A stretch of DNA of 64,000 nucleotides from Lepidodermella squamata (Eukaryota; Animalia; Gastrotricha), in the NCBI GenBank assembly GCA_047495785.1, contig JBLDXI010000017.1, positions 1,922,001-1,986,000 on the forward strand, in the 5' to 3' direction. The notes beneath the pieces are model-generated. The model worked only from the letters and a program-made list of their open reading frames with translations. It did not search any database and was not told the origin of the DNA. Below are positions 31,147 to 52,408 of this stretch, piece after piece. The position numbers were made by a program, and so were the translations under genes. The first letter of the stretch is position 1, and each line of letters begins with the position of its first letter.

Positions 31147-32319
31147 TCAGACAGGCTTTTCAGCGGATCTTGTTGCCATAACGTTACTGCGAGAGGCGAG
31201 GCTTCTAATAGTTGGATTTCTGCTGATCGCAGATGCTCCCGGCTCATTCGTAGACTCATGGCCTTGCCTGCAGCATATGCCGCTATCCTTCGGCAGAAGT
31301 AAGCTGCAAACGAAAAGATTAAAGGCGCAGTTGAGGTATATGGGCCAAGCACAAGCAAGAACAGTGTTCGATTGAAGAGTCTTCTCAGACAATGACCAAT
31401 GCTTCGCCTGATAAATAGTCAGTGCGACCATACAATTCATAGGAAGAAACGCTAATATCGTAACCGCCATTGAAACCCCCATCAAAGAATTAAGCTGGAT
31501 TTCTCGTTTTCTCGCAGAGTCCAATAGACCTCTAGTTGCAAGCGTCGATCGAATTCGATAGATGTTTAGAAAATTGTAGGCTGCAATGCCCAATGGGAAG
31601 ACGAAGGCAATAAAGGCGTAGCTGATTTCAAGTAGCCTGACTGACGGTAGCCTTGACACAGAATGAACGCACATCTCAACCATTCTTCCGTCTGTCATTT
31701 CAACTGGCTCAAGGAACAGCAGGTGGAATATGCCGTACGGAACGTACCAGAGGAGGATCGCAGCGGCAGCAGACATCAAGATGGTAATTATTAGGTATGT
31801 CAAATTAAGGGATTTGGAAATATCGAAACGAGTTATGCAGAATCGGCGCTCGATGCTTATTGACGTGTACATCAAATTTGATAGCGTTGCCGGGGACAAG
31901 AAGACACAAAGAGCAAAGCGGCATCCAAGCTCGCCGTAAATCCAATTTTCATGCATTCTAGCGAAAACCTTTGCCCCGCCAACAGCCAAAAGCAGCAAAT
32001 TACACATAACTAGAATCGTTACTAATAGGAGAAGAGAAGCTTTAACGGCACAGCTTCGACTGAAGTTGACAATCGCACACGTGTTAGTCATTATTCCAAT
32101 GAAGGAAACAATTAAGGTGAATCCAATTTCGAATTTGGCACACTCCTCGTTTGGCCGGTTGATTTGTTGGCTGTAAAGAAAATAACACTCTTCCGAGCCA
32201 TTTTTGCAGATCCATGATTCTCTGAGTGAAGGTGCCGCATCTCCTTCATTTTCAAGTGAACTTGGCTGGGAGCTGAAGCCGTAACACTCCTTAATTGATG
32301 TTAACCAGCTTCTGAGCAT
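31147..32319 (-). CDS. FFAR4-like class A GPCR G1, intronless
   Basis: 7TM; CYFLYSQQINR N-terminal motif, ARMHENWIYGELGC, SIERRFCI. Confidence 0.88.
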   Translation of the reverse strand: MLRSWLTSIKECYGFSSQPSSLENEGDAAPSLRESWICKNGSEECYFLYSQQINRPNEECAKFEIGFTLIVSFIGIMTNTCAIVNFSRSCAVKASLLLLVTILVMCNLLLLAVGGAKVFARMHENWIYGELGCRFALCVFLSPATLSNLMYTSISIERRFCITRFDISKSLNLTYLIITILMSAAAAILLWYVPYGIFHLLFLEPVEMTDGRMVEMCVHSVSRLPSVRLLEISYAFIAFVFPLGIAAYNFLNIYRIRSTLATRGLLDSARKREIQLNSLMGVSMAVTILAFLPMNCMVALTIYQAKHWSLSEKTLQSNTVLACAWPIYLNCAFNLFVCSLLLPKDSGICCRQGHESTNEPGASAISRNPTIRSLASRSNVMATRSAEKPV

Positions 32320-32567
32320 GTTGCTAAATTAATCAAACCTCCTGTGCAAAGTATACTGCTATAGACTCCCGAAAATCAATTTGGTCACTGCAAATGGCTT
32401 TATTATTAAATGACAACGAGGGATTAGTTTCAATCGTCATATCCTCCAGTTAATCGAAAAGTCACGGGCTGTTCCCAGAATAAAGCATTATCGCGAGGCC
32501 CTGATGGGCGTAAATAGAAACCAGGCACTATCATTATATTTGTTCAAACTTATAGTTCCAAGTACAC

Positions 32568-33599
32568 TTATTGGATCATTGTCGTTGCGGTTAAGCTAAT
32601 CTGTGTTCTAGATCTGTTCGCAGTAGAAAATCGTCGAGATGAGAAGCGTAGGATGGTCATAATCGTCGGATTTACAATGGTTCTCGCCGTAACCAACAGA
32701 CAACAGGGAAAGAATAAGCTTTCGTAGATATCATGGGCAATTTCTTGCTTAGAGAAAGTCACAAAAGCGGTCAGAATGTGAATTGGTAGCGTGCAGACGA
32801 CAAAGGCTAAATTGGTCGCTCCAGCCATAACAGCTAATTGTGTCTCCCTACGGCTGATGCAGCGGCGAATGCTTCTCCCGTATAAGCTACCACGCACCAG
32901 AGACGAATGGCTACGAACGTAAAACCAAATGGAGAAGTAGCTACAGCAGTTGAATATGAAGGGTAGCAAAAACGTTATGGCGAAATTTATCGCGTTAGCC
33001 GTATGGAAATTATTTCTTGGATATTTCAAATTGCAAGCGCTTAGTCGGTCTTGAGCCGCATAAATACAGAGTAGCAAACTTGCAGCTATGAAGTAAACAA
33101 AAGCCATGATCAGAGCCACAGTTTCTTCCGGTCTCTGTTTGCATCTCGAACTTGCTAGCTTTATTGACCTAGATCGAACCCGAGTTCTTCGCTCGAGGGC
33201 AATCATCGAAGTCGAAAGAGCTGTTAGAGCCATGAGAAGCACCCAGACGTAGGAGAAGAAAGCACAAGCTGATTCACTGAAAAACCAGTTCTCAAAATTG
33301 AGCAATACACCTGCAACAACCGTATGACTTGACAGGAAAATATTTGCTATGCAATTTAATCCAAGTAGAAACAGAAATCGTTTGCTGCTTTTCGAGTTGT
33401 AAAACAACACGTAGTTGAAAACGTTTGCTGAAAGGCTGAGGACGAAAAGAAGCACGGCGAATCCTAGTTCGATGAACGCATCTCTTAGCGGTGGCCCCGA
33501 TTTGAGCGGGTTACTTAAACTGGTCTCCAGCATCGTCTGTCCTTCGTTAGCAAACAAAGTGGACTGAACATACTTTTTCGTCGATCTACTTGTATCCAC
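32568..33599 (-). CDS. Array GPCR G2, intronless
   Basis: 7TM; ALERR, VCTLPIH, RTIVNP; lacks the Cys-rich N-terminus. Confidence 0.88.
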   Translation of the reverse strand: MDTSRSTKKYVQSTLFANEGQTMLETSLSNPLKSGPPLRDAFIELGFAVLLFVLSLSANVFNYVLFYNSKSSKRFLFLLGLNCIANIFLSSHTVVAGVLLNFENWFFSESACAFFSYVWVLLMALTALSTSMIALERRTRVRSRSIKLASSRCKQRPEETVALIMAFVYFIAASLLLCIYAAQDRLSACNLKYPRNNFHTANAINFAITFLLPFIFNCCSYFSIWFYVRSHSSLVRGSLYGRSIRRCISRRETQLAVMAGATNLAFVVCTLPIHILTAFVTFSKQEIAHDIYESLFFPCCLLVTARTIVNPTIMTILRFSSRRFSTANRSRTQISLTATTMIQ

Positions 33600-34090
33600 T
33601 CCTCTGTGTAATACACGTCATCAATTGAATTACGCATGTAAATTTAGAATGCCGCGGAGGATAAATTTAGGAGCCTCAGCTGTCTGTGTTTATTTGAATC
33701 TGGACCATCTCCTGTCACAGTTATTTCGATCAGTTATTCAGTGAAACTATCTATTGCTGCATTTTGCCCAAGTTACGGGAATAAGGAATTGATGAACACA
33801 GCATCTTCGTGCAGTTAGCTTTTACCAGTAATTGCGTGGTTGCTGTGGGTCATGTCGTCCCATGTTATACCTATCATTCGATAACCCTCGATGCGTAACG
33901 GAATGAAAATGTTCAATATGTGCGACATCTCCCCCGGATGTTTCATTTATTGCGTGAGCGAAATTCGGTATCACCCAGGATTTGATGGCCATTTAATTAT
34001 TTAACGCAATTTACATCACGGTGGGGCTCACTGAATATTTGATGATGAAATCTCGATTTAAAAAACTCGGCATTCTAATTACCGTCGAAA

Positions 34091-34261
34091 ATGCACCGAT
34101 CGGAAATAGTTTTCCTCCTGCTTCTGAACGCTATATCGTCATCACAATGTCTAATAGCAGCCAAGCGGGGTGCAGCTGCTGACACTGGTCACAATCATGA
34201 ACCAATTCGATGGAGCCCTTGGAGAAACATTATCGGATCATTGTCGTTGCGGTTAAGCTAA
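34091..34261 (+). pseudogene. Truncated 5' duplicate of the Trp-rich membrane gene, still an open 56-aa frame
   Basis: 34091-34228 aligns with 35758-35892 and ends at the G3 stop codon. Confidence 0.75.
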
Positions 34262-35195
34262 TCTGCGTTCTAGATCTGTTCGCAGTAGAAAATCGTCGAG
34301 ATGAGACGCGTAAGATGGTCATAATCATCGGATTTATAATGGTTCTTGACGTAACCAACAAGCAACTTGGAAAGAGTAGCTTTTCGTAGGTATCATTTGC
34401 AGGTATCTCGTCAGAGAAAGCAACAAAAACAATTAGTATATGAATGGGAAGTGTGCAGACAGCAAAGGCGATACTAGTCGCTGCAGCCAAAATAGCCAAC
34501 TGAGTCTGCCTTCGTTGGATACTCCGGCCAACATTTCCGCCGTACAAGTTGCTGTTGACTGGATACGAATGCCTCCGAACGTGAAACCAAATAGAGGTGT
34601 ACATGTAGCAGTTGATGATGAATGGTAGGAGAAATGTTGTAACAAAATTTATCACATTTGCGATATGGAAATTATTTCTCGGATACGAACTGCAAGCTAC
34701 GCCACGCCACTCTTGAGCCGCATAAATAGAGAAAAGCCAAGCCGCAGAAATGATGTAAATAATAGCCATAACAATAAGAGTTGCCAAGTCTTCTGGTCTG
34801 CGATTCCATCTCCAACTGATTAGTTCCGGAGATCTAGACCGAACCCGAATTCTTCGCTCGAGGGCAATCAGCGAAGTAGAAAGAGCCGTTAGAGCCATGA
34901 GAAGCACCCAGACGTAGGAGAAGAAAGCACAAGCTGATTCACTTAAAGGCAAGTTCTCGCAATTTAGCAATACCCCTGCAACGACCGTATGGCTGGCCAG
35001 GAAGATATTTGTTAAACAATTGAAGCCAAGCAGAATCACCAATAGTTTACCGCTTTTCGAGTTGTAAAACAGTACGTAGTTGAAAATGTTTGCAGAAAGG
35101 CTGAGGACAAAAAACAGCATAGCAAATCCCAATTCGATGAAAGCATCTTTAGGTGCCTTCATTTCGAGAAGGTTGCTAAACGAAGTTTCCAGCAT
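34230..35195 (-). CDS. Array GPCR G3, close paralog of G2
   Basis: 7TM with long stretches nearly identical to G2. Confidence 0.88.
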   Translation of the reverse strand: MLETSFSNLLEMKAPKDAFIELGFAMLFFVLSLSANIFNYVLFYNSKSGKLLVILLGFNCLTNIFLASHTVVAGVLLNCENLPLSESACAFFSYVWVLLMALTALSTSLIALERRIRVRSRSPELISWRWNRRPEDLATLIVMAIIYIISAAWLFSIYAAQEWRGVACSSYPRNNFHIANVINFVTTFLLPFIINCYMYTSIWFHVRRHSYPVNSNLYGGNVGRSIQRRQTQLAILAAATSIAFAVCTLPIHILIVFVAFSDEIPANDTYEKLLFPSCLLVTSRTIINPMIMTILRVSSRRFSTANRSRTQISLTATTMIR

Positions 35196-35756
35196 CGCCA
35201 GGCATTTACTAGCAAATTTATGGTGGACTGAAAATATTTATTCCGGTCGACAATCCTACCCCTCCAGTTTAACCTAATGTCCTTCAGACCTTAATCGAAT
35301 TACGCTAGTAATTTTAAAATCCTGCAGTGGCGTCACCTCTCTGGCTGTCTCTTTTTAGTTGAATCTGTCAAAATTACTTTCTTTACTTTATAAGCAAACT
35401 ACGGCTCCGTTTTGAGTTTTAGGTTAATGGCGACAAGGCGCCTGACATACAGGATGATGAAATCAGCAAGTCCGTGGAATTAGAATGTACCAGGAAGTTC
35501 ATACTTGCCGAGGACCCCTTGTCCATCCGCGCGTTACTGATCAGTTTGATGCATAACCTTTTCTATTCGAAACTTAATGGAAATGCGTACAGCCGTGCGA
35601 CTTTTCGCCCGCTGATTGCGAGAGCGAAACTCGATATCACCCGGGAGTTGATGGCGGTTAAATGCACTGCGTACCTCCCGATACGTTCACTGAATATTTG
35701 ATGATAAACTGCGGATTAAAAAATCCTAACTGTCAAAATGCTATTGATAATTGACA

Positions 35757-36653
35757 ATGCACCAATCAAGAATGTTGTTCCTATATATTCTGAGCGCTAT
35801 ATCGTCATCACAGTCTCTAATAGTAGCCAAGCGGGGTACTGCTGACACTGATCATAATCATGAACCAATTCAATGGAGCCCTTGGACAAAAATGCAGCAT
35901 GCTGTACCATCTAGTAATAACAAATGGCCCAACAACTGGGAGATCACTGATTTCGAAAAGGGAAGGCACGTTGAAGTACCAGTATCCTGGGGTAGTTGGT
36001 CGAATTGGGACGGGCGAAAAGCGGCCCTTGATATCACCTGGCACAACAGTTGGGCTCCTTGGAATGCACCAGTTATATTCCCAACTGCGACTACCGCGAC
36101 GCTAAAATTGCAATCGACTACAACAACCACGGATCGATTGGAAAAATTAACCACAACTTTGACGATGAAGTCAACGGATGGTAAAAACACCAGCTCGATT
36201 CAAGCTAGGAAAATCAAGTTTTCTACATCTACTATCCAAAGTTCAGAGTATTTCACAAGTTCCGCTAGATTTAATGACATTCCATTAGCGTTCACTGAAG
36301 ATTCAAACAAGAGTTTCGTTGAAACTTTGGCATACTTTTCAAGTTTTCGCGCGGCTGATGTGAATTTGGCGCCTCAGTCTGAGAAAATCGTAGCGCCAAT
36401 ATTCGCCTACTTGATAATTGGAGTTGTTGCTGGATTGCCCTCTATAATTCACTCTGAAAACAAGAAGATGTTCTGTGCGTGGATCGCATTTTGGCCTTTC
36501 CTTGCCGTTTGCTGGCTCCTCACTTTCTTCGGTCTGGCCAAGTGGTGCATGACAGAAAGTGCCTCGAAAGGATACCACGCAGACTCCAGGTGTGACTGCT
36601 GGTTTTACAAAACATTTTGCTGCCATGAATCTGGTGAAATTGTGCCTTTGTAA
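35757..36653 (+). CDS. Orphan membrane protein: signal peptide, WxxW-rich head, Thr-rich stalk, two C-terminal hydrophobic segments, Cys-rich tail
   Basis: Single 300-aa ORF with WSPW, WGSWSNW and WAPW motifs. Confidence 0.75.
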   Translation: MHQSRMLFLYILSAISSSQSLIVAKRGTADTDHNHEPIQWSPWTKMQHAVPSSNNKWPNNWEITDFEKGRHVEVPVSWGSWSNWDGRKAALDITWHNSWAPWNAPVIFPTATTATLKLQSTTTTTDRLEKLTTTLTMKSTDGKNTSSIQARKIKFSTSTIQSSEYFTSSARFNDIPLAFTEDSNKSFVETLAYFSSFRAADVNLAPQSEKIVAPIFAYLIIGVVAGLPSIIHSENKKMFCAWIAFWPFLAVCWLLTFFGLAKWCMTESASKGYHADSRCDCWFYKTFCCHESGEIVPL

Positions 36654-36834
36654 ATAATTAAAAATCCCGGATGAGTAAAACCATATCTATTTCATTGACT
36701 ACAACGCCAAGGCATGCTTTTTCAATATTCCTCACCGTAGAATGATATTTACATCAGCACTAATATCAATAGGAAAACCGGTTAACATAGCATGTTTTTT
36801 CATCTTTTTTGGTATCATCACATCTGCCCCATTT

Positions 36835-38029
36835 TCAAGCCTTGGAGAAAACGCTTGGCGAACGAGAGCCATTATGATCGACTTGAGGACTATTAAGCGC
36901 CAGCAAAGTGTGTTTCGTATCCGTTGAGCTAAACTGGCTTGACTTTCGCTTATCTGCAGCAGCAGCCTTGTTGTTGCTATCCGATCGAACAAACGCCATG
37001 ACTATTGGGCTGAGAATCGTGCGAATGGTGATCAGGAGGCTACAAGCGAAGTAGAGTAGACTCTGCGAAGTTCGCTCATTGTATCGGTCGTAGGCGACCA
37101 CATAGAAAGTGACGACATGCAGAGGCAGCGTGCACGTAACAAACAAAGCGTGAGTCAGCCCGGCGACGAAAGCGAGGTTGATCTCACGGCGCTTCTTCTG
37201 ACGCGTGATCGATTTATCCAGAGTGCTCTGCTTCGACCCTCGACGAACAAAGAAAAAAATTACACTAAATAAAGACATGATATTAGAGCATTAAGGAGGG
37301 GGATTTGAGTTGAACTCACAAATAGTTGTAAATGTTCAACAGCACTGGAACAAGAAAGGTGATAAGGAAATAAACAATATCGGCCAAATATCGCAAGGTA
37401 GTTCGAGTGAAGATGGTGCAAACTTGGAAGGTTTCTGATCCAATCACTATGTCCAAAACCTTGGCGACTTTCAGAAAGTAGAACGGGTAGACCCATAGTG
37501 AAATGTTGACGATAGTTAGAATTACAGTTAGAATTACAATCCGTTTGATTCGAGATTCGTTCGGGTTTTTGGTGTTCCAATCGCAAACGCAGACCTTACG
37601 TTCGTATGAGATCATAGTCATAGTCCACATCGACATAGTCATGAGAGCCATCCATGAATTGAAGGTTGACTGGCAGCCGACTTCGCCAAGAGGCCAGTTC
37701 GGGAAAATTCGCGTAACGGCAGTCACAACGCCATGCATCGCGATCGCAATGTTGGAAATGCTGTAGATGGCGAGCAAAAACATAAACTCAGCCTTGACCT
37801 TGCGCCCGCGGAACGAAATGTAGTTGGCTATGTTGGCAGGTATCGAACAAAGTAGGAGCACAACTGTAATAATAGCCTCAGTGATAGCGCAGTATTGGGG
37901 TCGCTCATATTGCTGATGATACAAGAAGACGCATTTGACCGGAGATGAGCTACCATTGAAGCAGTACCAAGACTTGTTCTCCGCATTTGGTACCCCGAAG
38001 AAATCAAAGCATTTTGCAACAGATTCCAT
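36835..38029 (-). CDS. Array GPCR G4, 2 exons (intron 37265-37319)
   Basis: Cys-rich N-terminal motif, TRIFPNWPLGEVGC, SYERKVCV, CTLPLH, RTILSP. Confidence 0.88.
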
Positions 38030-38907
38030 GGCTTGGGTTTGTTTATAAAGCTCTAACAAGAATACAAGAATATTAAGTAGGAGGATCTATATCAGTTGCG
38101 GTGAAACAGGGTTAAACTCATTTTCAAGGACGGGAGTAATCAAAATTGCGGCATCTATCCTTCCTGAGCGCCTCAAGTTATTGATTGGCAAGGCTCCTAT
38201 GAATAAGCGAAGACAGCAGTCGATTGCTATGTTTCATGAATGAATACATTCTTGCTTGCATCACTGTGAAAACCTGCAATGTAACCCTCTTCTTATTTTG
38301 AAGAAACGTGGTGATATCAAATGCAAACAAAATATTTTTATTTTGAACTCCAAACGTCAGTGAAATATTACTAATATTTTTCTAGTTGTAGTAATCCCTT
38401 TCAAGTAATCATTCGCGTTGTGTATTGTATTATTTTTAATGGATTTTTGTGCGTCTCATTTCTAGTTCAACGCTGATGATGCGCTACCGGGTATACTCAA
38501 TTACATAAGACTTGTGACAAATCCCTTTTTGCCACCGGCGACTATTTTAGTAGGCAGAATGTTCGGTGTAAAAAGAAAATCGAATTTAACATCATTTCTT
38601 GACACATACTGATTCCCAGTATAGCGTTTAGTGATCGATCAACACGGAGCAATAAGAAGCTGCAAAAGAGCCTAGTTAGCTGAGACATCAGCACGACGTA
38701 AATAAACTTGATCCTAATATAATCCCCCGACCAAGCCCGGAATTACGCTGAAAAAAATGTTTCCAGAATGATCTATTCAGCATAATCCTTCAGATCCTTG
38801 AAAAGTACCGGTGCAAAATTGATGAATCATTAACTTTCAGTAAGCTTTATTGAATCAAGTTTCCGAAAGAATACGATCACGAAACAAAATGGGGTTTTGG
38901 TCATTTT

Positions 38908-40652
38908 TCAGAGGAAAACCGGCTCTGATGTCTCAACAACTACGACGGCCTGTGAGGGAGTTTCTTGATTGGTAAGAAGCGTTGTCCTGCTGGTGGCGTT
39001 CTCCGGAGAGCAGCTCGAATGAGTGCTGATGTTATCGCCAGCATTGTTCTTGTTGTTGTTATTATTTGGCAAGAGAAACGAAGAAAAGCCCCTTTTGTTA
39101 TTGAAAGTTGTGACGTTAGTTGTACTAGCAACGCTTGGATTAGCCTCTGATGATCCCGAAGAAGTTCGGCTGCAGGTCATCATGCCCGGGCCGAAGATCG
39201 TACGCATGAAAACGAGAAATGTACCGAAAAAGTACAGATTACCCTGCGAAATGTGATCTCCATAGCGATCAAAAGTTGCGATGAAGAACATGATGACGTG
39301 TAGGGGCAAAGTGCATACAACGAATACGATATTAGCGATGAACGCTACTGTGGCCAAACTGACCTCGCGTCTTCGGGCTATTCTCGCCAGCCGTTCGTTC
39401 ATCAGTGTATTTCCGGAAGGACGAGCGCGGCGCACGTAAAGCCATATCGAGAAGTAGTTGAAGATGTTTACAATCAACGGTACTAAGAAGGTGATTAAGA
39501 AGTACACCACGTCTGCTAGATATCGATGCGTTGTTTTCACGAAAATCGAACAAATCGCAACGGGTTCAGTTCCGTTTTTCACGCCGTCAATGTATACAGA
39601 AGCGACGCGAGCCACCCTCCGTACCATGAAGGGGTACGTCCATAAGCCGAGATTGACGAGTGCGAGTCCTGTTACGATCAGGATCATTCTTACAAGTCGC
39701 CGGCGGGATGATGAGAAAGTTTGGGTTGAACACACGCAGGCTCGCCGTTCGTAGCTGATTATTGTCATTGTCCAGCAACTCATGGTCATCAATACCATCC
39801 ATCTAAAACATAGTCAAAACAAGAGTTAGAGATAGATCTTCCTTCAGATAATTCAAACAAAGAATCTAGATTGATTAATTCACTTGATTTTTCTCGTTTC
39901 CTTTCCTATCCTTTCCTTTCATCTACTCCACCCTTTTCAGTGTTGCCAATCCCACCAGCTGTGATTGAGGTTATATCCAAAAAACTTCGCTAAGACGCCC
40001 AGAGCATTACATCTCATGATAAAATGAAAGCAGAAACCGTGGTTAGGTTATACAGTTAAAAGTTGATAAATTTAGGGATTAGTTTTTTGATCAATTTTTC
40101 TCGGACAGTTTGCGGGCCGAAGTCAGATTTGATCCTGTAGCTTTCTCAAATCTCCCATTTAAGGATATTAATATTCAAGGATACTAGCGACTACTTACAT
40201 TTCAAAAACAGCGGCACATCCCTGTTCACCAAAGAGCCAGTCATCATTCAGCCTATAAAAATTAAGGATTGAAGAAATTATCAACATTGAAAATTTGGCA
40301 TTTACTTGGCAAGATTGACGAATGCTCCGTGCAAAGCCATCGCTACATTACACCCGTTATAAACGCCGAGTAAGAACAGAAATTCTGGCTGAACATGCCG
40401 GCGTTTGTAGTAGTTGATAAAGTTCGTGATATTAAACGCAATTGAGCAGAAAAAAATCGCCCAGTTTAGCGCGACCTCGAGACATGCGCACAAGATCGAT
40501 CGATTGAACTGCTGGTAGTATAGAAAGAAGCATTCCTGATCAGGCCAAGCTGGGGATACGTTGTGGAACAGGTTGTCCAAGTACGAGCCTTTCAAGCAGA
40601 CCCAAGATTTGTTAACAGCTGAAGGATGGCCCAGAAAGCTGATGCACTCCAT
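38908..40652 (-). CDS. Array GPCR G5, 3 exons
   Basis: Exon 1 in ORF 40302..40652, micro-exon ~40251-40198 (LNDDWLFGEQGCAAVFE), exon 3 from ~39802; SYERRACV, CTLPLH, RTIFGP. Confidence 0.88.
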
Positions 40653-41125
40653 TGAAACAAAGCTGTCTTTATTCTATATATGAAGCAGTGCTAATGAATT
40701 TAATAAAAAATTCAAGTTCGCGTATCGCAGACTGGGCTAAAAAATTGCGTGAACGTCCCTCGAGGGAAATGCCACGAAGTGCGTATTTATAAATGACTAC
40801 GCTAATAAAGCCTGGTTATAAAAAATGAATACAATAGTATAATTTATTTACAACCGGCAATCGATTGTTATTGCCTAAAATGAAACTGATTTTAAAAGAC
40901 ATTTCTTGCTAATTAATTCTTAAGAAAATAGAGATATTTTTCTTAATACTGCGGGGTCATCTTAAGAAAAAAATTGATTTTCATGATGATGAAGTTTGCT
41001 TACAGCAAAATAACTTCTCTGTATCTTCTAATCTGGGAGGATCAAGTTAGCGTCGAAAATACATTTTTACTGCCAAGTCACTCATAATTTTATTTCCGTA
41101 AACCATACAGGAAATTAGTTTTTCT

Positions 41126-42370
41126 TCATTTTTGCTGCGATTGATCGATGTAAACTGCTGAAGTGGTTACTAATTGTTTTTTGTTTTTGCTACTACGAAT
41201 TAGACTAGGTGGCGTTGAGTTAGTAAGCTCCAGCGATTGATCCTGCTTAACCAGCCTAGCGAGCAGACTTTTCGGAGACAAATTTCGCTGTTTATCGTCG
41301 ACTGACGTCTTCAGTTTCGCAGTAGGATCGTTTGTTGTCTGGCTGCCTCGGTTCGAAGTCATCAAAAAAGGTCCGGCTATCGTGCGAATGTATAGAAGAA
41401 ATGTCCCTGCCACGTACAGTGAATTCGTCGAGATTTGGCCGTTGTACCGATCTGAAGTTGCGATGAAAAACATGACAACATGTAAGGGTAGGGTGCATAC
41501 AGCGAAAAGTAGGTTCGAACTAGCCGCGACAACCGCTAATCGCACTTCTCGCCTTTTCGCCACCTGGATAGAACGGCTCGACCCGGCGATAATGAAAGCC
41601 ACTCGACGTACGTGAAGCCAAATTTTCGCATAATTTGCGGCGTCGATGATTAGCGGAATTAAGAATGTTATTAAGAAATACACAACATCAGCCAAATATC
41701 GGAGATGGGTTTTTACGAAAACCGAACAAATTTTCACCGGATCTAGGCCATCTTTCACGCCGTGAACATAGACTGATGTCGTCCTAGCGACTTGTCGAAT
41801 AGCGAATGGGTACGTCCACATTCCTATATTGAGAAGGCCGCATAGGACTAGAACAACGATCACAATAGCGACGCGGCGTTTCGAAGTCGCGTCTGAGCAA
41901 ATGCAGGCCCGCCTTTCGAAACTGATGAGGGTCATGGTCCAGCTACTCAGCGTCATAAGAATCATGAAGCTCGCATGGATAGTTGCACAACCCCAATCGC
42001 CGAACATCCAATCGTCATTCAATTTGGCTAAGCTAGAAATTGCGCCGTGGAGGGTGATAAGGATATTGCAGCAGTTGTATACACCGATGAGGATCAGTAA
42101 CTCAGGGCGGACGTAACGTTTTTCGCGATATGTGTTGAAAACCATTCGGTTGCATAACAGCGACACGAGAAATATCAACCAGGTTAAAAAGACTTCAATG
42201 CAATTTCCAACTATCGAATTGCTGAGATTCTGGTAGTACAGGAAGAAGCACTCTTGATCAGACCAACGAGGCGATGCGTTTTGGAACATATTCTCGAGAA
42301 AATTCGCCGATAGACAAATCCATGATTTGTTGACGGCTGAAGGTGTTGCGAATAACCAGATTTTATCCAT
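41126..42370 (-). CDS. Array GPCR G6, intronless CDS
   Basis: Close paralog of G5; SFERRACI, CTLPLH, RTIAGP; likely start MDKIW. Confidence 0.88.
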   Translation of the reverse strand: MDKIWLFATPSAVNKSWICLSANFLENMFQNASPRWSDQECFFLYYQNLSNSIVGNCIEVFLTWLIFLVSLLCNRMVFNTYREKRYVRPELLILIGVYNCCNILITLHGAISSLAKLNDDWMFGDWGCATIHASFMILMTLSSWTMTLISFERRACICSDATSKRRVAIVIVVLVLCGLLNIGMWTYPFAIRQVARTTSVYVHGVKDGLDPVKICSVFVKTHLRYLADVVYFLITFLIPLIIDAANYAKIWLHVRRVAFIIAGSSRSIQVAKRREVRLAVVAASSNLLFAVCTLPLHVVMFFIATSDRYNGQISTNSLYVAGTFLLYIRTIAGPFLMTSNRGSQTTNDPTAKLKTSVDDKQRNLSPKSLLARLVKQDQSLELTNSTPPSLIRSSKNKKQLVTTSAVYIDQSQQK

Positions 42371-44888
42371 AATGCAAAACCTAGGAAATTTACAAGTGTA
42401 AATAAATATCAAACCAAACGTTGGAGAAGCTAATTTTCACTAAAAGCTATCGCCTCTGATAGACCAACTCTTTATGAAATTCTTTCATTCAAAACAGGAT
42501 GGAATCACGGACTGTACTATTTTAACGAGATTGAGAGAGCCACAGCGAAATTCCGTGGACAGATGAACGGAAATCGAGCATGGATCATTAAATTGCGCAA
42601 AACTGATTGCTAGTCTCCGCTGGAGTTAACGGTAATCATGCGAGTAAGGTAATTGGATGATTCGATTGCGAGCCTGGACAAGTGGGAAGAATATTTTTCA
42701 CGCACGTTTTTTTAGGTTTTATTTGGCGTAATATTTTATTGCGTTTGGTCTGAAACTCGTTTTTTCCATATCTCGTGCAGATTTGAAGATAATTAAGGTT
42801 GAGTGCACGCGTCTCTAAATTGGAAATTGTTAAGGTGATGCGTAATAAATATCTCACATAAAGTGGGGACATACTAAGACGCGACATCCGTTTTCACTTA
42901 ACTTCGCGAATTGTGTGTCTTCGCATCTGAGTTCGAGATTCTTTTCACCACGTATGTCACCAAAATTCAAGTATAATAATTTTATAACCAAATTGGACTT
43001 GCTGAAATCGGACTTATTTGAGAGTCGAGATTGAATCTAGGAAAAGGTGATAACAATAGGACATGCATCGCGAATGAAGAATGAATAGTGGCATATTTTT
43101 GCAAATTGGTCTGGATTCATACTTTGAAAATGGGGACCATTTGCAAAAAAACATCAGTCGATTTGTCCGTAATAATCAGGTAGAAAAATTGCACTCTCCT
43201 GAATCTCGGCGTAAATGTGGACCGCTTTTTTTTACTGCATAATGTATCTAGAAATCTGGAATGAGGTAAAAATGGGAATAAGATGTGAATAACTGTATCT
43301 CAAGAGTCAGAGAAATTAGTTTATAGTTAAAAGCAATTACCTCTGCATACTAAGCCCCTCCTTAACAAATGATGATAGTGAAAACAAGAAACAGGGATAA
43401 TACGTGGATTTGGGCATGATTAGGGCTCTTCATTTAAGCAAGACACTGAGTGACGCGAATGCAATTCTCATGGGCAATAATGCGTGTCAATGAGGGTTTG
43501 TCGGCTTAATTTGATAATTTGAAGCCAACATAAGCCAATTTTGTGACTCATTTGATCGAAAAGTGCACAAGGATTTCGCATAAGGCAATCATTTCAGCCT
43601 CTTAATTACGCGGCGCTAACTTAATTCGTAAGCTTATTTATGGAGTTTCGGCCAACTCGCATTATATTGGGGAAAACTACGTTCGCTATTAGGACAAGGA
43701 AACCATGTCTTGTCGAGAAAATGAGGAGATAGCATGGAATCTCTCGACAAAAAATGCTGAAACGTATTTCCTGAATGATTTATGATGGAATGACACACAT
43801 TTTGCGTGGTACACGGGTGTCCAAATTGTGACTACTCGCTAGCTTAAGCTCCCTAATGCAGGTGCTAGATAGAAATTTAAATTTTTAATTCCAAAACATT
43901 CGCTTTGATTTTAATGCTTAGGTATTTCACAATTTTGTGTAAGTCGGACTTTCCGTAAAACAAACAGGGCAACGCATGTCTCTACAGTCAAAGTATGTGT
44001 AACGCTAACAACCGGAAAATCAACGTCCGACGGGCTGCATATTGAATCATATAACCCCCGCGCAAACAAAGATCCAGCTCATACATCACTGGAAAATTAC
44101 CAGCCAATATAATTTCACCTCGCCATGTTCCTGAAAGCTAATTAGGAAAATTGACTACGTCATAAGTAGGGTGACAATAACTTCGAAAGATTAGTTTTTA
44201 CGCTATTTTGAGACGAAGGGGGAATGTCCGAAGACATAAAAAATACCGCAGCTGTGCATCCGTTTAATTGCAAGTCAAAAATAAATAATAAATAAAATAA
44301 AAAATAATAAAAATTGGGGCAGATAAGATAGAAATGTTAATAAATTTAAGAGGAAGAGAAAAAGTCTCAAGGTGTGCGATGCCATTAATAGAGAACTTGA
44401 AATCGTTCTTCCCTTTTTTGTTCGAAGTTAACTGGTCAGCACAGTTCAGCACATCGCGGGCATCTGAACCATGAAATTAAAATAGAAAATGGAAATACAG
44501 CAGTGACTGCACTCGATGGTAGCCAGCGTGTTGCTCATGGCAAATGTACGATGTTACTGCTTGAATGGTCATCATGTGATATTCAGGGACATGCTTTTTA
44601 TTAGCAAAAATGAAATGCAGCGTCCGGACCAAACAAATACTTATATGCGCAAAGCCAAGCAAGAGTACGCCAATAATTACAGTTTCCTTTAGCATTTCGA
44701 ATTTGCTCAGATTTTTCCAAATTATTCATTTTATTTACAAATGTTTATCACGTGCCTGACCTTGGCTCAAAAAGTGTCCGCCTTGCCTTTTCGTTCTAGT
44801 TTTCCTTTTTTTCTGATATCTATATAATGCGAAAGTCAAAGGGAATAAAAATATAGCTCTGAGATTAAAAGACAGTCTGCCAGACATT

Positions 44889-46265
44889 TCAATCTAGAGA
44901 AAACGCCGTCGCTACTTCCTTGGATTTATACATCAAGAGAGTTGGCAGCGAAGCCGCCCTAGTCCGCCTTATCAGCTGATGAATCGAGTAGTCTGAATGG
45001 CTCTTGGTCGACGAGCCGAAGTGAAATTGGGCTGATCGTCTAATGAGGCCGTACTTGCTTCTCAATATCAACATTTTCTGGCCGACCGCTGATAGACTGG
45101 CCGGGCGTAGGTAGTTGAAAATTAGGGGCGAAATGGCAGCGCGGACATATAACATTAGGGTAGATAGGAAAAACGCGGCTGATTGTAGGGTTTGAGCTTT
45201 CCTTTGATCGTAAGCGATATAGGCGACCGTAACTTGAAAGGGAACTGTGAAAACTACGAAGATGACTAAAGTTGCGCCTAGGATGATAGCTAGTTGAATT
45301 TCCCTATCCAAAGATCGCTTTCCGTTCGTCGCAATCGATTTCCGATGTACATATGCCCAAATTTGGCTATGGAATAGACATAAAACGCCCAAATAATGTT
45401 ACCTACCACAAATTGATCCTTACCAGTAGTTGTAGACGTTGAGAAGAAGGGGCACGACAAAGGCGAAAGAGAAGAAAATAGTCTCGGCAAACACTCGGCG
45501 AGATGGAATTCGAGCAGTTAGGGTACAAATGTGAATAACTCGACTTGCATTAGCTTTCATCCAACTTTCGTCAACTACCTCTTCGTAGTCGTTCCTAAAA
45601 TTCTGAAGCGGCCGAAATGTGTCACCGTTAACTGGCATAAGCCTAGCGACTCGAGAGATGAAAAACGGGTAACTCCAAAATAGAAGATTTGCAATTAGAA
45701 TTGTCGTTAATGCAACAGCTGTTCGGTAAATACGACGCTTGTCATTCCAGGTAGAGGGCCTTAGCCTCGAATTACAAATTCTTGACCGACGTTCAAAGCT
45801 GATAAGCGTCATCGACCATATGCTGAGGGTGATCAGGGTGATTGAAAGGTAAGGCAGTAATGCACAACCTACTTCGCCATACAAAAAATCATCACTTGTC
45901 CTAGAAAAAATCAAACAAATTATATTGTTGCTATTATAAGGCGTCTCTAGCAACCTTGCGTAAGTGATTACAGTTCCGAGGGACGTGAGCCCGATGTTAC
46001 AGAAGGCGTAAGTTGCGATTAGAAGCAACAGCTCGCGCTTCACCCGCCTTAGATAGAAATCCACAAAGCAAGCGACATTTGCGGGAATCGAAGCGGCACA
46101 GACTATTAGGCTGACCATCGTTTCTGCATAACCGCAGTGTTCCGATGTCCGATTCAATTGCTGAAAGTAAAGAAAGTAACAGCCGAAGCGGCGGTCTTCG
46201 TTATCAGGACATATCCAAGACTGGTTGACCGACGCTGGGTTACCCCAAAAGGCGAGACAACTCAT
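44889..46265 (-). CDS. Array GPCR G7, 3 exons
   Basis: In-frame 54-nt intron 45901-45954 and intron 45367-45423; SFERR, RAAISP. Confidence 0.85.
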
Positions 46266-46728
46266 TCAAAGTTCTGCAAAGTTATTTTGTGTATTGAGAG
46301 AGATTCATCATAAGAATTCTCTGATAAAACAAGCGGCATATTAGGAGATTCGTGTTTAACGCTACGTTTAGCACGGTGCAATGATTAGCTTACAGTTTCG
46401 CGCTCGTAAACAAGCGAAAACGGCCGCGTGATGACAGAGTGATACCATTAGCCGATCTTTGGCCCGGCAAATCGTTCGCACATTCTTTCATATAAGCAAT
46501 TTCCGCCCGTAGTGCACTGAATAACAGACAACTAGCGGCTGTTTGTTTCACTCGAATTAACCCGCGTATTTTTTTGAATTGAAAATTGTACCAGGTCAGC
46601 AAACATCAAGTTTTTTTTACGATTGAACTCCGCCTTTTACAGATACATTTTTTACATACGTAAATTAGTTAAGCTAGATTAGAAAATTTCACAGCAAAAA
46701 GGGGCCCGAAAAATCAGATTAGGAAATT

Positions 46729-46866
46729 AGCTTTGCGCAGTGGCAGTTCCATACTCAGTGAGGTGCAAACCGAGAGGTGGAAATTGCTAATTGAAAACTA
46801 CCCCAATTACCCGCTCTGAGGACCTACGGGTCCGCTGTAGCACTTTCTGGAGCCCCACAAGGGGCT
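46729..46866 (+). ncRNA. U4: U4 snRNA, copy 2
   Basis: Identical by eye to 21107-21244. Confidence 0.95.
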
Positions 46867-46958
46867 TTTGAAATTAAAAACAAACCATTGTCCAAGTTAT
46901 AGTTTAATGACCTTATTCGCTAGAAATATCATTCTTATTCACCCGATTAATCAGTTTA

Positions 46959-48483
46959 TCACATTGAGTTAGGTGTACCATTGTCCATTCGCCTACTATT
47001 TTCACACTCGTCGACAAGTGATGCCGTCTCCTCAATTTGAACTACTAACGACGATTTCCCAAATTTTCCAGACACTTCAAAATCAACAGCCGTGTTTGAG
47101 TTACTAATTGCTCCGGAAGTGTTACGGTAAAATCGCTTTCCGATCACACTAGCCACGGGTGAGTTTTGATAGTAGCCACTCAAGAAGGCATTGCTGGATT
47201 TGAAATTTGAGCTGCTGTTCATCTGTGATGACTGTTGGCTATTGACCTGACTGACAACAATCTGCAATATTGGATTGATAGTCGCGCGTAGATTTACCAA
47301 ACACGTGCAAAGAAACAAAACGGATGACTGAATCATTTTAGGCTCGCCGACTATGCGCCGCGTCAGCACGAACGCGGAAGCAACGTGTAATGGGAGGGTG
47401 CAAACAAAGAACAGCAGCAGCGTCGACGCCATTGAAAAGGCTACAACAAACCGCCGATGCTGATTGCGCTGATAAGCAGACGTTCCAGCGGAAGGTTTTA
47501 GAGCAGCTACGTTCAAGGCCTGCCAGATCGCACTATAAAATGGAAAATAAATATAAGTTAAATCCTCCTTAATAATATTGCTAACAAAACTTAAAAATCA
47601 ATAATCGTATTCAAACTTACAAGTAATTTTTGGCCATGATAATGAAAGGCACGAGAAAAGCACTGAGAAAGAAGAATGACTCAACAACTACAGGGGTCCA
47701 TAGCGAAACGCCAGCTCCATAAAAAATAACGCAAACACTGAGTTCGTTAGAAAGTGATAAATCCGTAGGAACTAAGATCGTCACCATCCTCGCAATTTGG
47801 ACATACGAGTAGACGTAGCCGACTATGAGCATAACGGTAAGAGCCGAAACTGTCACAACAGTTGAGACTGTAAGGAATCTGGTGCATCTTTCCTTTGGAT
47901 TGACAATGGATGTAGATTCATTAACTAACAACAGATGCTGTTCATTGGTGATTAGCGACATGATTAGACCAATTAGGACAGATAAAGTAATCCAACTGCT
48001 TGCAGTTGCAGTACAACCGATGCTACCGAACAGCCAATCTGACGAGAGTCTTGATACTCCTTTTATAACCCCAAGACTTGCAAGGAGGATGTTACATAAT
48101 CCTAATAGAGCGATTAGAAGCATGTGTTCGCGGTAAATTTTTCGCCGATAGAAAACTGTGATACAAGCTAAATTTGCTGCAATTGACGCTCCACAGATGA
48201 CGAAAGCAACCGTAGCTTCCATATAGGGACATAGTAAACTAGTCCGGCTGAGTTGTTGGAAGGGGAGGAAGTAATACTGATAGCTACCTAGCAACTGAGC
48301 CGCCTCGCTGAAATTCGCGTAATCGCGAGTTAGCTTGCTTCGTTCAGTCACGAAGTCAACATCGCCAAAGTTGAGAGCTGATTCGTTGAATATGAAATCA
48401 CCGTTGTCGATAGCGGAGGCTGCTGTCTGGGAGTTCGAACTAGACCACCAGTCATCGCCGGCAAATTTCAAACACGAGAACAT
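46959..48483 (-). CDS. Array GPCR G8, 2 exons (intron 47533-47620)
   Basis: 7TM; SRLSSDWLFGSIGC, NEQH at the DRY position, CTLPLH, RATINP. Confidence 0.87.
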
Positions 48484-51075
48484 AATATTCCTATAAGGGG
48501 AAGATAGCCTTGGTTTCCATGAAGAAAAACCGTATAATTAAGGCAGAACACTCTATCCTCAGTAGTCGCAAATTAATTTCCCTGCCTTTGTCGCGGAGGA
48601 AATTCGAATTTGGAGTGTCTCAAACAAAAAGAAAGGCCCCGCTTGGGTCGCAAATGAGCGTATGGTAGACGTACCCTGAACAAAACTTATATTCTTATCG
48701 ATCTATAGAAATCGAGTTTTCAGAGTAGTTAAACTGTTGCAATATTATTCAATTATATATCGCTCGAAAAATTGCTTTTAGCTCCTAAATTTTATATTTG
48801 TCGACCGTGTCTACACAGCGCTAAAAGGGGAGAAAATTCAGATAAAAAGGCGATAGTAAAATACACTTCAAGTTTCTTGCAAAAATAAACTGACGATATA
48901 ACTCTGGTTATGCCGATTTTTATGGATTTTTTTATGGAAAAAAGCGAGAAAGAAAACAGCGTGTGAAAAATAATCTGGCGTATTTCACTATATGCCTGAG
49001 AGGAGAAACACAATGCAACTTTCCATACTACGACCGAGGCATGCTATTTCTTAGGTTGGGTTCCCGTTACCACCAAGCATTTGATAAACCTAATACGTGA
49101 ACAACACAACCTATATATTGGCAATGTGATCGACCGGGACAGGAATCTACCCGAAATGGTTTTTTTTCCAACTAGATGAGGCATTGAAGGAGCACAAGTC
49201 AAGTGTAGGGAATACACGGGAAACTGGAAAATCTATGTGCGAAATTCTTATAATGCCTTTATATTCCCACTCCCATCGAAAATCAAGTCACTGACATCAA
49301 AATAAGACAAATGAAGTAATTTGTACAAAATATACATCTGTCATATGACATCACCTGTCTGGATTGAGGTCTATTCCGCTGCAGAAGAGATGGAGTTTCC
49401 GCAGTGAGAACGTTTAATTTCAGTTTGCACTCTGCAATAAAGCTCTAAGAAGCTGGGAAGCTGATGGCAACAATATTTTTCAAATTAATCCCATGAGATT
49501 ATAATAGTATCTTCCTAAGAAGTAAACAGATGAGACCTGTTAACCTTATTGTTTCGAAAAAACTAGATCAAGTGACTATCACTTAATTGAATAATAAGAG
49601 CGGGCGAGAGCATTCTAGATTTTAGTCACTTCGAGCAGAAAAGAATGTGTCTAATAAGGCATCTAATAAGCGCTGATATGACATATAATGTAATGACGTT
49701 AAAATGAAGCAAGCCGGTCCATTGATCAGCCAGCGTTAAGATATGATTCATAGGAATGACAGTATTTTGGTTACCATCCGTATTAGTTTCTATGCACTAT
49801 AAAGCAGGCGCTCTGATATAAGGTTTGTACTTTTTTCAAAATTTGGCGACACGATTATTCGCCGATAAATGTTTCAACTTCATTCTAGCAAGATGATGTG
49901 AAATAGAAAAGGCTCAGCCCGCTTATCCTTCGACGTGAAAGAAAGGCGGACGGATTACGTGGCTGAAGTAAAGGTCGGATTACTTTTGCGCTAATTGCGA
50001 TTGCGATTGGAATATCTTGGGACTAATAATAAAAATACGATGAGAGTTTCAATTTTCAACAAGATGAGCTCTTAACTTCGCATGCGATGTTAGCAAATCC
50101 GCTATTGAGTACAAAACGCAATCAATTCCTAGCGTATTCAAACATTTCAATAATAATAATATAAAATTCAACGATCCATCGATCAACTCTTTTGAGTTTT
50201 GAGCTATACTCAAAGTCAAATAGACCGTGAAGCATCTAATAACAACAACACCCGTCTTCCGCTTGTAGAAAGCTTTCCACATTTTATATTTAACGAGCAT
50301 TGCATGCGTTTAATTTGCTTTAATAAAACACGTGAATACATCAGAGATTGTCAGAGAACAGGATATACGCTTAGGACATCGTTCGCTTTTATTGAAAAAA
50401 CTAGCGTTAAGGCAAGGTACGTTGAAATTGATGAGACTTGAACGCACTGCATAACAAAATTCTCGAATTTCCTTTCAGACATCCACGTCTTCATTGATAC
50501 CGAATTTCATTTAGGTCTCATAATCGACTGTTGTGATTTACCCGGTTTTAAACTAACGAGCCGGTGCTTTTTCCTTCTTGATTACCTGCTGTCTCATTGA
50601 ATCAATCATCGCTCTCGACTTTTCTGATTATCAAGTTTTAGTGGGCCGTTGCTAATGCAGTCGACGTTTTGCGAACAAGTGCGTTTGTTAAGCCGGATAA
50701 ATTTTAAAAGGACACGCGATCGATCTCATTATATTGGACGCTAATTATAATTGATAATTTGATTCCTAGAGCTTAAAGAATTAACGACCAGAAAAATTGC
50801 GCAAGATAATCGTGGTCGACCCCGTGAAATCACGAGTAATGCAATTCAAATTGAAGTATTCAAGAGGAAGAAATTATTACTGATAAGTGATAAGGACTAG
50901 ACCGAAGAAAAATGGCCCTCGCCTCAGTTGCAGGGAAGAGACTTGTATGTAAAAAATGGTCGAAACATTCCTCTGACTGTTGAATTCGATAGAAATCATA
51001 GGTGTCTGCTTTATTTTCTATCAAAATTTTCTCGGAAAGAAATAACATTTTTCTCCCACGTGAAAACCAGATTCC

Positions 51076-52408
51076 TTATACTGTAGATGGCGGTCCTGAT
51101 GAGTCGAAATTGCTCAGATTACAAACAACCGGATCTTTGAGAGACTTCTTGTCTTCAATGATCAATGAAGCTGATCCCCCAGTATTAGGAAGTTTCGGGT
51201 CATTCGCCTGGCTGACCACAATCTGCAGTATCGGATTTATGGTTGCGCGAAGATTGACGAGGCAGGTGCAAAGGAACAAAACTGAGGACTGAATCATTTG
51301 CTGATCCCCAACCACGCGGCGTGATAAAACGAAAGCCGATGCTATGTGAAGTGGTAAAGTGCAAATGAAGAATAAAACTAATGTTGATGCCATTGAGAAT
51401 GAAACGATATAGCGACGTCGTTGACTGCGTTGATAAGCCGCCGTGCCAGCAGTAGGTTTTAAGGCTGCTTTATTAAGAGTTCTCCAAATTGAACTGTCAC
51501 GGAATGGATTAATATTAGTTCATAGTCTAAGAAAATATCACGGGGAAAACTTACAGGTAGTTTTTGGACACTATGATGAATGGAATAAGGAAGGCTCCTG
51601 AGAAGAATGTAGCCTCAATCAGAAAAGGGGCCCATATGGACACCCTAGCGCCATAATAGATAACACAGACGTTCAAAACTTTCGTGGCTGATAGCTGAGG
51701 CGGAACCGATATTGAAACCATCCTTGCAATTTGCACGAAGGAGAATATGTAGGTCATCAGCGTGAAGATAATGGTAACAACGACAGCTGTCACTAACACT
51801 ATTTTGTAGAAACGTGACCCTTTGATTGATTGCTTTAATTGATGATCCCCTAAGATGAGCCGTCGTTGTTCAGTAGTTAGCAGAGACATTATCAACCCTA
51901 TTAGAATTGATAGAGCTAGCCACAAACTGGTGACAGATTGGCATCCCCAGTTACCAAACAACCAATCAGCGCTAATTCGAGATATTCCTTTAATGAATCC
52001 TAATACTGCTAGTAATATGTTGCAAGAGGCCAATAGAGATATTAAAAACATGAGCTCGCGGTAAATCTTCCGCCGGCAGAACACAGTAATGCAAGCGATA
52101 TTTGCCGCTATTGAAGCCGAGCAAATTGTGAAAGCAAGGATAGCTTCGGTGTAAGGGCACAACACCGTAGTTCGGCTAAGTTGCTGAAACGGGAGGAAGT
52201 AGTAACGGTATTTTCCGATCCATAAGTCATCGTCCACTGTTTCTGAGGCATTGAAGCGATTTATCTCTCCGTCGCTTATCGCATTTTCTAGGATCGTATT
52301 GTTGAACAGATATTCATTAGATTCCTCCGCAGGTTGACCAGAAACTTCAGTTTTTGACGGTATTGATGCCCACCATTCGTCGCCGGCAAACTTGAAGCAA
52401 GACAGCAT
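51076..52408 (-). CDS. Array GPCR G9 (paralog of G8), 2 exons
   Basis: 7TM; SRISADWLFGNWGC, TEQR at the DRY position, CTLPLH, RATINP; intron ~51494-51554. Confidence 0.87.

Follow-up and report, generated by a model that had tools for sequence, protein, structure and literature searches.

The stretch of DNA analyzed here, called the window throughout, comprises 64,000 nucleotides of the genome (121.2 Mb in 151 contigs as searched) of the gastrotrich Lepidodermella squamata, a small spiralian, and lies at positions 1922001-1986000 of contig C17, with a GC content of 39-50%. Positions 31147-52408 of the window are filled by nine co-oriented genes on the minus strand, each for a class A G protein-coupled receptor (GPCR), which we call G1 to G9. 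Neighboring genes are separated by gaps of 0.25 to 2.6 kb, none of the nine gene models contains an internal stop, and pairwise identity among the nine paralogues ranges from 20 to 69%. A preliminary description of the DNA had proposed nine co-oriented seven-transmembrane (7TM) paralogues over 21 kb, and open reading frames (ORFs), splice sites, and matches to Pfam family PF00001 (7tm_1) all bear this out. Single exons or intronless genes served as input for database searches, profiles, and structure jobs (alignments A1-A3), and joined spliced models built from the window coordinates were used for alignment, trees, and dN/dS. With single exons as queries, the Pfam 7tm_1 cut-off was reached or nearly reached by seven of the nine genes, being met by the single-exon genes and by most exons of the split genes. 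For G8 and G9, the first exon taken by itself fell below the cut-off but aligned throughout.

Four motifs recur in the array. An N-terminal motif of the type [YF]FL[YP]xQQxxR, here called the lid motif, is present in seven of the nine genes (in G6 as the variant QN..N) and is missing from G2 and G3. A glutamate in transmembrane helix 1 (TM1; Glu1.35) is found in all nine. The top of TM2 (position 2.64) is Arg or Lys in seven genes and Leu in G2 and G3, and S.ER..C[IV] occurs in G1, G4, G5, and G6. The counts in the preliminary description (seven, nine, and seven for the first three, and several for the last) proved exact on recount, and its statement that G2 and G3 had lost both the basic residue at 2.64 and the N-terminal motif also holds, with both gone and Glu kept; the switch of ligand class that it drew from this loss would be speculative. 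With the pairwise identities given above and a best library match at E = 3e-87, an array of this kind is far above chance.

Four of the genes consist of a single exon. G1 (31147-32319) encodes 390 amino acids with the lid motif, Glu1.35, Arg2.64, and an ERR sequence; it diverges most from the rest of the array and matches Pfam 7tm_1 with E = 1.7e-12. G2 (32568-33536) encodes about 322 amino acids when started at the probable ATG at 33536, and G3 (34230-35195), at 321 amino acids, is its recent paralogue (69% identical); both carry Leu2.64 and no lid motif. G6 (41126-42370), the gene used for AlphaFold2, encodes 414 amino acids with the variant lid motif, Glu1.35, and Lys2.64. The remaining genes are split. 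G4 (36835-38029; exons 38029-37320 and 37264-36835, separated by a 55-nucleotide phase 2 intron) has the lid motif, Glu1.35, and Arg2.64 and gives a Pfam match on each exon. G5 (38908-40652; exons 40652-40306, 40252-40199, and 39802-38908) has the lid motif, Glu1.35, and Lys2.64. G7 (44889-46265) is modeled with exons 46265-45955, 45900-45424, and 45366-44889. G8 (46959-48483; exons 48483-47621 and 47532-46959) has the lid variant YFLPFQQ, Glu1.35, Arg2.64, and Gln at position 3.50 (EQH). G9 (51076-52408; exons 52408-51555 and 51493-51076) is a paralogue of G8 (57% identity) and likewise has Gln at 3.50 (EQR). The starts of three genes were corrected in these models, to 33536 for G2, 38029 for G4, and 42370 for G6.

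A phase 2 GT-AG intron directly after the TM5 sequence NY is common to G4 (37265-37319), G7 (45367-45423), G8 (47533-47620), and G9 (51494-51554) and is not present in G1, G2, G3, G5, or G6. G5 has two introns, neither of which is at this site; the first (40253-40305) is in phase 2 and falls in extracellular loop 1 (ECL1). G7 very probably has a second intron, of 54 nucleotides (45954-45901), that matches the first intron of G5 in phase and in its place within ECL1. We infer this intron, which is in frame, because its removal restores the ECL1 spacing of the family. The patchy distribution of the TM5 and ECL1 introns indicates repeated intron loss within the array.

Selection on the array was read from the spliced models. 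The youngest pair, G2 and G3, has a dN/dS of 0.32, and in each remaining pair the synonymous sites are saturated (proportion of synonymous differences, pS, 0.77-0.87) and the frames still intact. Two proteins from metagenome contigs, P0001 and P0002, nest among G4 to G6 in trees, so that those duplications are older than the divergence from one or more other organisms. An array of decaying or nonfunctional duplicates, that is, of pseudogenes, could account for the replacement of Arg3.50 by Gln in G8 and G9, but it is difficult to reconcile with nine intact frames in the face of synonymous saturation in most pairs, with the dN/dS of the youngest pair, with conserved splice sites, and with orthologues from other organisms nesting inside the array. 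The pseudogene explanation was rejected on dN/dS and intact frames and is extremely improbable. We conclude from the frames and substitution patterns that the nine genes are demonstrably intact and under purifying selection.

The preliminary description had related the array to the free fatty acid receptor FFAR4 (GPR120), and the motif positions were compared across receptor groups. Glu1.35 is present in nine of nine window genes, 8 of 14 metagenome relatives, 48 of 53 invertebrate FFAR4-like proteins, and 6 of 6 vertebrate FFAR4 proteins, and in 0 of 46 peptide receptors. Arg or Lys at 2.64 is found in 7 of 9 window genes, 12 of 14 metagenome relatives, 52 of 53 invertebrate FFAR4-like proteins, and 6 of 6 vertebrate FFAR4 proteins, and neither residue is among the five commonest at that position in the 46 peptide receptors. 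The position of FFAR4 F25 is Phe in 7 of 9 window genes, 46 of 53 invertebrate FFAR4-like proteins (15 of 15 in a smaller set), and 6 of 6 vertebrate FFAR4 proteins; the equivalents of F27 and F28 are aromatic in most of the seven lid-bearing window genes, and Phe7.36 is present in seven of the nine genes. MAFFT aligned one N-terminal pattern at constant spacing from the Glu across three groups, reading NRT-RFPFFSD in vertebrate FFAR4, N.[ST]-YF[TS][YF][FY]SEFNR in invertebrate FFAR4-like proteins, and C[FY]FLY.QQFNR in the window family, in each case followed by Glu. Nothing comparable was found in the 46 peptide receptors of the alignment. Moreover, invertebrate FFAR4-like proteins carry an upstream NxS-aromatic element (NRSYF...) that matches NKSW[IV]C of the family.

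Sequence searches were performed with single genes and with profiles. A word-index protein search with G6 gave no match, a result made uninformative by the relatives that an exhaustive HMMER search later found, and neighbors in the ESM Atlas were generic class A receptors under assorted names. Single-gene searches against solved structures gave weak, mixed matches to peptide and lipid receptors, with neuromedin-B, galanin, opioid, LPA6, and GRP receptors first. Against the nine-gene profile (A2), the scores were 71.1 bits for orexin receptor 2, 69.4 for human FFAR4, and 68.1 for NPY1R. These rankings, including the 1.7-bit lead of the orexin receptor, are what would be expected if the genes were an orphan class A family derived from peptide receptors of the orexin, NPY, or NPFF type, with convergent or plesiomorphic FFAR4-like motifs and peptides as ligands. 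The alignment of the profile to FFAR4, however, began ten residues earlier than those to other receptors, and in it HMMER paired the TM1 Glu of the family with E43, the basic residue with R99, and ERR with ERM. A true invertebrate FFAR4, that of Lingula, has human FFAR4 as its best solved match, aligned from residue 20, yet NPFF and somatostatin receptors trail by only some 5 bits; this narrow margin accounts for the tie of the window profile between FFAR4 and the orexin receptor, and it can also be counted in favor of a peptide receptor origin.

The exhaustive HMMER search of a library of 1.8 billion proteins returned 2271 matches (best E = 3e-87), which fell into tiers. The first tier consists of ten matches at E < 1e-30, and all of those looked up lie on ENA or Logan metagenome contigs. 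The second tier consists of invertebrate proteins named "free fatty acid receptor 4-like" by NCBI, from bivalves, Lingula, Lineus, and Branchiostoma, and the third consists of peptide receptors of the GPR83, NPY, orexin, RYamide, and galanin types. Guinea-pig FFAR4 (P0115) is also among the matches. In profile-profile comparison, hhalign scored the family at 311.5 against FFAR4-like proteins, aligned from column 22, and at 241 against peptide receptors, aligned from column 58. The preference for FFAR4-like proteins thus amounts to 70 units and reaches through the N terminus, contrary to what a peptide receptor origin would predict.

Trees with outgroups were computed in IQ-TREE (LG+C20+F+G4, posterior mean site frequencies) from an alignment restricted to the 7TM core, which excluded the columns of the N-terminal motif; outgroup sampling was limited. 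An earlier FastTree analysis of 129 rows, in which the family, the peptide receptors, and the FFAR4-like proteins met at one three-way node, was uninformative and was replaced. In a 55-row tree, the family and FFAR4/FFAR4-like proteins formed one clan (support 100/99, branch length 0.47), and the NPY, orexin, GPR83, RYamide, galanin, and PAR3-like rows lay outside it. When more GPCRs of the same genome were added to give a 70-row tree, the clan was recovered in 99.4% of 1000 bootstraps. Within the clan, the core-only trees show the family as a separate clade, which is either the sister of the FFAR4-like group or nested within it. In approximately unbiased (AU) tests, forcing the family to join the NPY-type clade cost 33.3 log-likelihood units and was rejected (P = 0.023). 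Robust grouping with peptide or other receptors was not seen in the class A core-only trees.

One cnidarian protein was also found within the clan. P0325 of Hydractinia symbiolongicarpus, annotated as "neuropeptide Y receptor type 4-like," joins the family stem (96/95 in the 55-row tree and 93% in the 70-row tree). Its placement hints that the clan is older than the bilaterians, unless it is due to long-branch attraction.

The proposed relationship to FFAR4 gains a structural meaning from published cryo-electron microscopy (cryo-EM) of FFA4, in which the N-terminal segment is a U-shaped lid that folds into the helix bundle and touches the ligand (PMC10473637). In the same structures, R99(2.64) bonds to D30(N) and E43(1.35), stacks on F304(7.36), and stabilizes an aromatic lid of F25, F27, F28, F115, and F303, and no specific contact is seen between agonist carboxylates and R99 (PMC10473637). 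The preliminary description had read the basic residue at 2.64 as an anchor for ligand carboxylates, and that reading fails, as R99 latches the lid and makes no agonist contact (PMC10473637). The motifs thus argue for a common lid architecture and not for carboxylate ligands. By analogy with FFAR4, the three motifs at the N terminus, 1.35, and 2.64 would be the lid and its latch. Consistent with this, lid and basic residue disappeared together in G2 and G3 and the Glu stayed, as expected if the Arg is a structural latch.

AlphaFold2 modeling of G6 with a 43-row family alignment gave seven helices with a mean predicted local distance difference test (pLDDT) score of 85 and a predicted template modeling (pTM) score of 0.81. 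N-terminal residues 11-50 were modeled with confidence (block-mean pLDDT 83-94) as a hairpin in which the strands WICLS and QECFF pair, and two conserved cysteines would be adjacent. VIA-align matched residues 41..340 of the model to residues 23..324 of FFAR4 chain 8iys_R with Z = 26.7, and the match begins at the lid. In the mechanism that we propose, the aromatic N-terminal segment would fold into the helix bundle as in FFAR4 and cover a largely hydrophobic pocket as a lid. This lid would be fastened by the 2.64-1.35 pair, with Gln standing in for Asp30 of FFAR4, and the Cys-bridged hairpin NxSW[IV]C...C[FY]FLY would brace it further. A small hydrophobic or lipid-like molecule bound under the lid would then activate the receptor. 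From the aligned motifs and the model, the window family probably has this lid-and-latch architecture.

The 7TM core of the family combines class A hallmarks with unusual replacements. C3.25, N1.50, P5.50, and P6.50 are present in all nine window genes and P7.50 in eight of them, Y5.58 and P7.50 are retained in most family members, and VIA-align gave Z = 26-27.6 for the G6 model against solved class A receptors. Among the 17 family members examined, however, all 17 have Asn at 2.50 and lack Trp4.50, Trp6.48, and Tyr7.53; in the window, position 6.48 is Thr in eight of nine genes and position 7.53 is Met, Phe, Gln, or Cys. FFAR4-like and peptide receptors, by contrast, keep D2.50, W4.50, W6.48, and Y7.53. 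Position 7.45, normally part of the sodium pocket, is Arg in G2 to G9 and in the metagenome relatives P0001 and P0002 but not in deeper branches of the family. We conclude that the family, on its residues, is an atypical member of class A rather than a nonmember. The replacement of D2.50, W4.50, W6.48, and Y7.53, together with Arg7.45, means that signals must be relayed through the core in another way than in ordinary class A receptors. We note that the pairing of Arg7.45 with Asn2.50 puts a fixed positive charge at the usual sodium site (e.g., at residues ~325-332 of G6).

Several observations weigh against reading the family as lid-bearing members of the FFAR4 clan. The family sits on a long stem (0.65-0.78), and long-branch effects are possible. 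The topology in which FFAR4-like proteins join the NPY-type clade and the family stands apart cost 24.0 log-likelihood units and was not quite rejected (P = 0.053). Moreover, hhalign scored FFAR4-like proteins against peptide receptors at 466, above the score of either with the window family, which identifies the window family as the derived, long-branched party. The fold is compatible with a lid but does not discriminate, as VIA-align gave NTSR1 and orexin receptors Z = 27-27.6, and Foldseek and VIA-align both ranked FFAR4 equally with NTSR1, orexin, and CCK receptors. At the residue level, the equivalent of Asp30 is Gln or Asn and thus not acidic, and W6.48 and F6.44, which take part in FFAR4 activation, are for the most part missing from the family.

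A peptide receptor origin draws on the same near-rejected topology and on fold searches that put peptide receptors first, in addition to the search rankings above. Against it stand the 99-100% bootstrap support for the clan in core-only trees, the rejection of a joint clade with NPY-type receptors, the distribution of Glu1.35, the N-terminal motif, and the basic 2.64 residue, and the hhalign preference, and we consider it improbable. The relatedness to FFAR4 put forward in the preliminary description is instead supported from four sides, namely, the profile against solved structures, the named invertebrate intermediates, the core-only trees, and the site counts. We conclude that on sequence grounds the window family very probably belongs to the FFAR4 clan. 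It is not one-to-one orthologous with FFAR4, to judge from its many-gene separate clade, its long stem, and the number of its loci in the genome.

That number is large. At least 52 loci in the genome match the family profile including its N-terminal region, with further arrays on C17 (1.604-1.630 Mb, 291 kb upstream), C7 (1.075-1.123 Mb), C26, C2, C19, C30, and C34, and the N-terminal motif was read directly in six additional genes outside the window. A lineage-specific expansion had been suggested in the preliminary description, and the finding of close relatives on metagenome contigs only, together with the at least 52 loci, upholds it. No orthodox FFAR4-like gene was found in the genome, where the best match to Lingula FFAR4 scored 55 bits at 26% identity and did not include the N terminus; this absence fits the window family as the lineage's own version of FFAR4. 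A literature search turned up no publication dealing with FFAR4-like genes of invertebrates or with an expansion of them, and neither "GPCR" nor "receptor" appears in the genome paper of Lepidodermella squamata (PMC11660948).

A second subfamily (loci L008-L014 and L018-L022) was observed on contigs C43, C28, C32, C10, C7, C36, C23, C54, C34, C19, and C33. Its genes are mostly intronless and encode about 400 amino acids with an N terminus of the QFIGWYHDLEY type, an ISYERR motif, and no Glu1.35. The second subfamily and the window family form a clade with 100% support, and the expansion of the FFAR4 clan in this genome therefore exceeds the at least 52 loci.

Environmental chemoreceptor repertoires are usually recognized by tandem arrays of more than 50 fast-diverging genes with few introns. 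The window family shows that gene pattern, being large, lineage restricted, tandem, and fast diverging, and a chemosensory role would be the most likely use of such a repertoire. By analogy with known repertoires, we rate chemosensory use at slightly short of even odds. Lipid-like ligands are suggested by a lidded hydrophobic pocket and, resting on the analogy with FFAR4, are a more tentative proposal, and fatty acids, the ligands considered in the preliminary description, would be speculative.

Alternatively, the genes could encode genuine receptors of the FFAR4 clan that are neither chemosensory nor fatty acid sensing, serving instead as receptors for internal hydrophobic mediators or acting in a constitutive, arrestin-only, or noncanonical manner with the tethered N terminus as a built-in ligand. 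The absence of D2.50, W4.50, W6.48, and Y7.53 from all 17 members, the further absence of R3.50 from G8 and G9, and the failure to keep the FFAR4 pocket residues W198 (ECL2) and F6.44 are in keeping with such receptors. The array structure typical of chemoreceptor repertoires speaks against them, however, as does the retention of P5.50, Y5.58, P6.50, P7.50, and ER(R) in most members, which suggests that coupling persists, and we regard this alternative as rather unlikely. The explanation that we favor, a functional subfamily of the FFAR4 clan with a lid mechanism and a chemosensory use, has in our estimate a probability of roughly 0.6.

FFAR4 is a drug target whose N-terminal lid was first seen in structures from 2023, and the evolutionary origin of that lid has hardly been discussed. 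Our comparisons suggest that the lid, Glu1.35, and Arg2.64 are a unit conserved far beyond vertebrates, and the joint loss of lid and Arg in G2 and G3 would be a natural experiment consistent with a structural role for Arg99. The FFAR4 scaffold can apparently carry a large repertoire after replacement of four switch residues that are nearly universal in class A. For the biology of meiofauna, the genes provide a candidate chemoreceptor family, possibly for lipid-like cues. A bolder proposal, which we consider unlikely, is that the lid and latch are an ancient module spread across bilaterians, and possibly cnidarians, that seeded a gastrotrich chemoreceptor repertoire of about 50-100 genes devoid of D2.50, W6.48, and Y7.53 and bearing Arg in the sodium pocket, perhaps with the tethered N terminus as an agonist or inverse agonist displaced by ligands. 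If that were true, these genes would represent a type of class A receptor with a different route of activation.

Other features of the window lie between and around the nine genes. On the plus strand, a single-exon GPCR gene of 400 amino acids (29528-30730; Pfam 7tm_1 E = 1.3e-10) stands tail to tail with G1 and has neither Glu1.35 nor the ECL1 Trp. It was considered as a tenth member and was not counted, as it fell inside the clan in one tree (on a branch of 3.67) and outside in another. Between G3 and G4, the plus strand, opposite to the array, bears an ORF of 300 amino acids (35751-36653), a possible gene, that is rich in Thr in its middle portion and hydrophobic toward the C terminus; it matched no Pfam family. 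The neighbors in the window are typical metazoan genes with MAM/CUB/astacin, Sushi, SNAPC3, and bHLH-PAS assignments. Meprin-like genes flank the array, with an ORF containing MAM and CUB at 1051-2340 on the minus strand and, at 58955-62989 on the plus strand, an astacin and MAM ORF that precedes one of 968 amino acids containing a CUB domain and four MAM stretches. Of the other neighbors, SNAPC3 is located at 7879-8715 and the bHLH-PAS gene at 56413-57678.

Compared with known systems, the window family resembles vertebrate FFAR4/GPR120 (solved as 8h4l, 8iys, and 8id6) in its class A fold, in an aromatic N-terminal segment ahead of TM1 with equal spacing to Glu1.35, in Arg/Lys2.64, Phe7.36, and Phe5.47, and, in four window genes, in an ER-type DRY motif with Cys3.53. 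It differs in that FFAR4 is single copy in vertebrates whereas the genes here are many, in the added Cys-bridged hairpin ahead of the lid, and in its residues, with Gln for Asp30, Asn for D2.50, Thr for W6.48, Met, Phe, or Gln for Y7.53, loss of W4.50, and Arg7.45 in G2 to G9. The nearest named relatives are the invertebrate FFAR4-like proteins, which bear names from automatic annotation. They share the NxS-aromatic element, the aromatic motif ending in FNR, Glu1.35, and Arg2.64, but keep D2.50, W4.50, W6.48, and NPxxY and have SE where the window family has QQ. Beta-group peptide receptors (orexin, NPY, NPFF, QRFP, and GPR83) are alike in 7TM similarity, in the W-x-F-G motif of ECL1, in the disulfide between C3.25 and ECL2, and in equal structural Z-scores; they have no N-terminal motif and no Glu1.35, and they are separate from the window family in trees. 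Finally, nematode Srw and Srsx genes, the rhinophore GPCR arrays of Aplysia, and flatworm PROF1 genes are tandem, poor in introns, and fast diverging, with dozens of copies confined to a single lineage. The window family differs from these expansions by its probable parentage in the FFAR4 clan.

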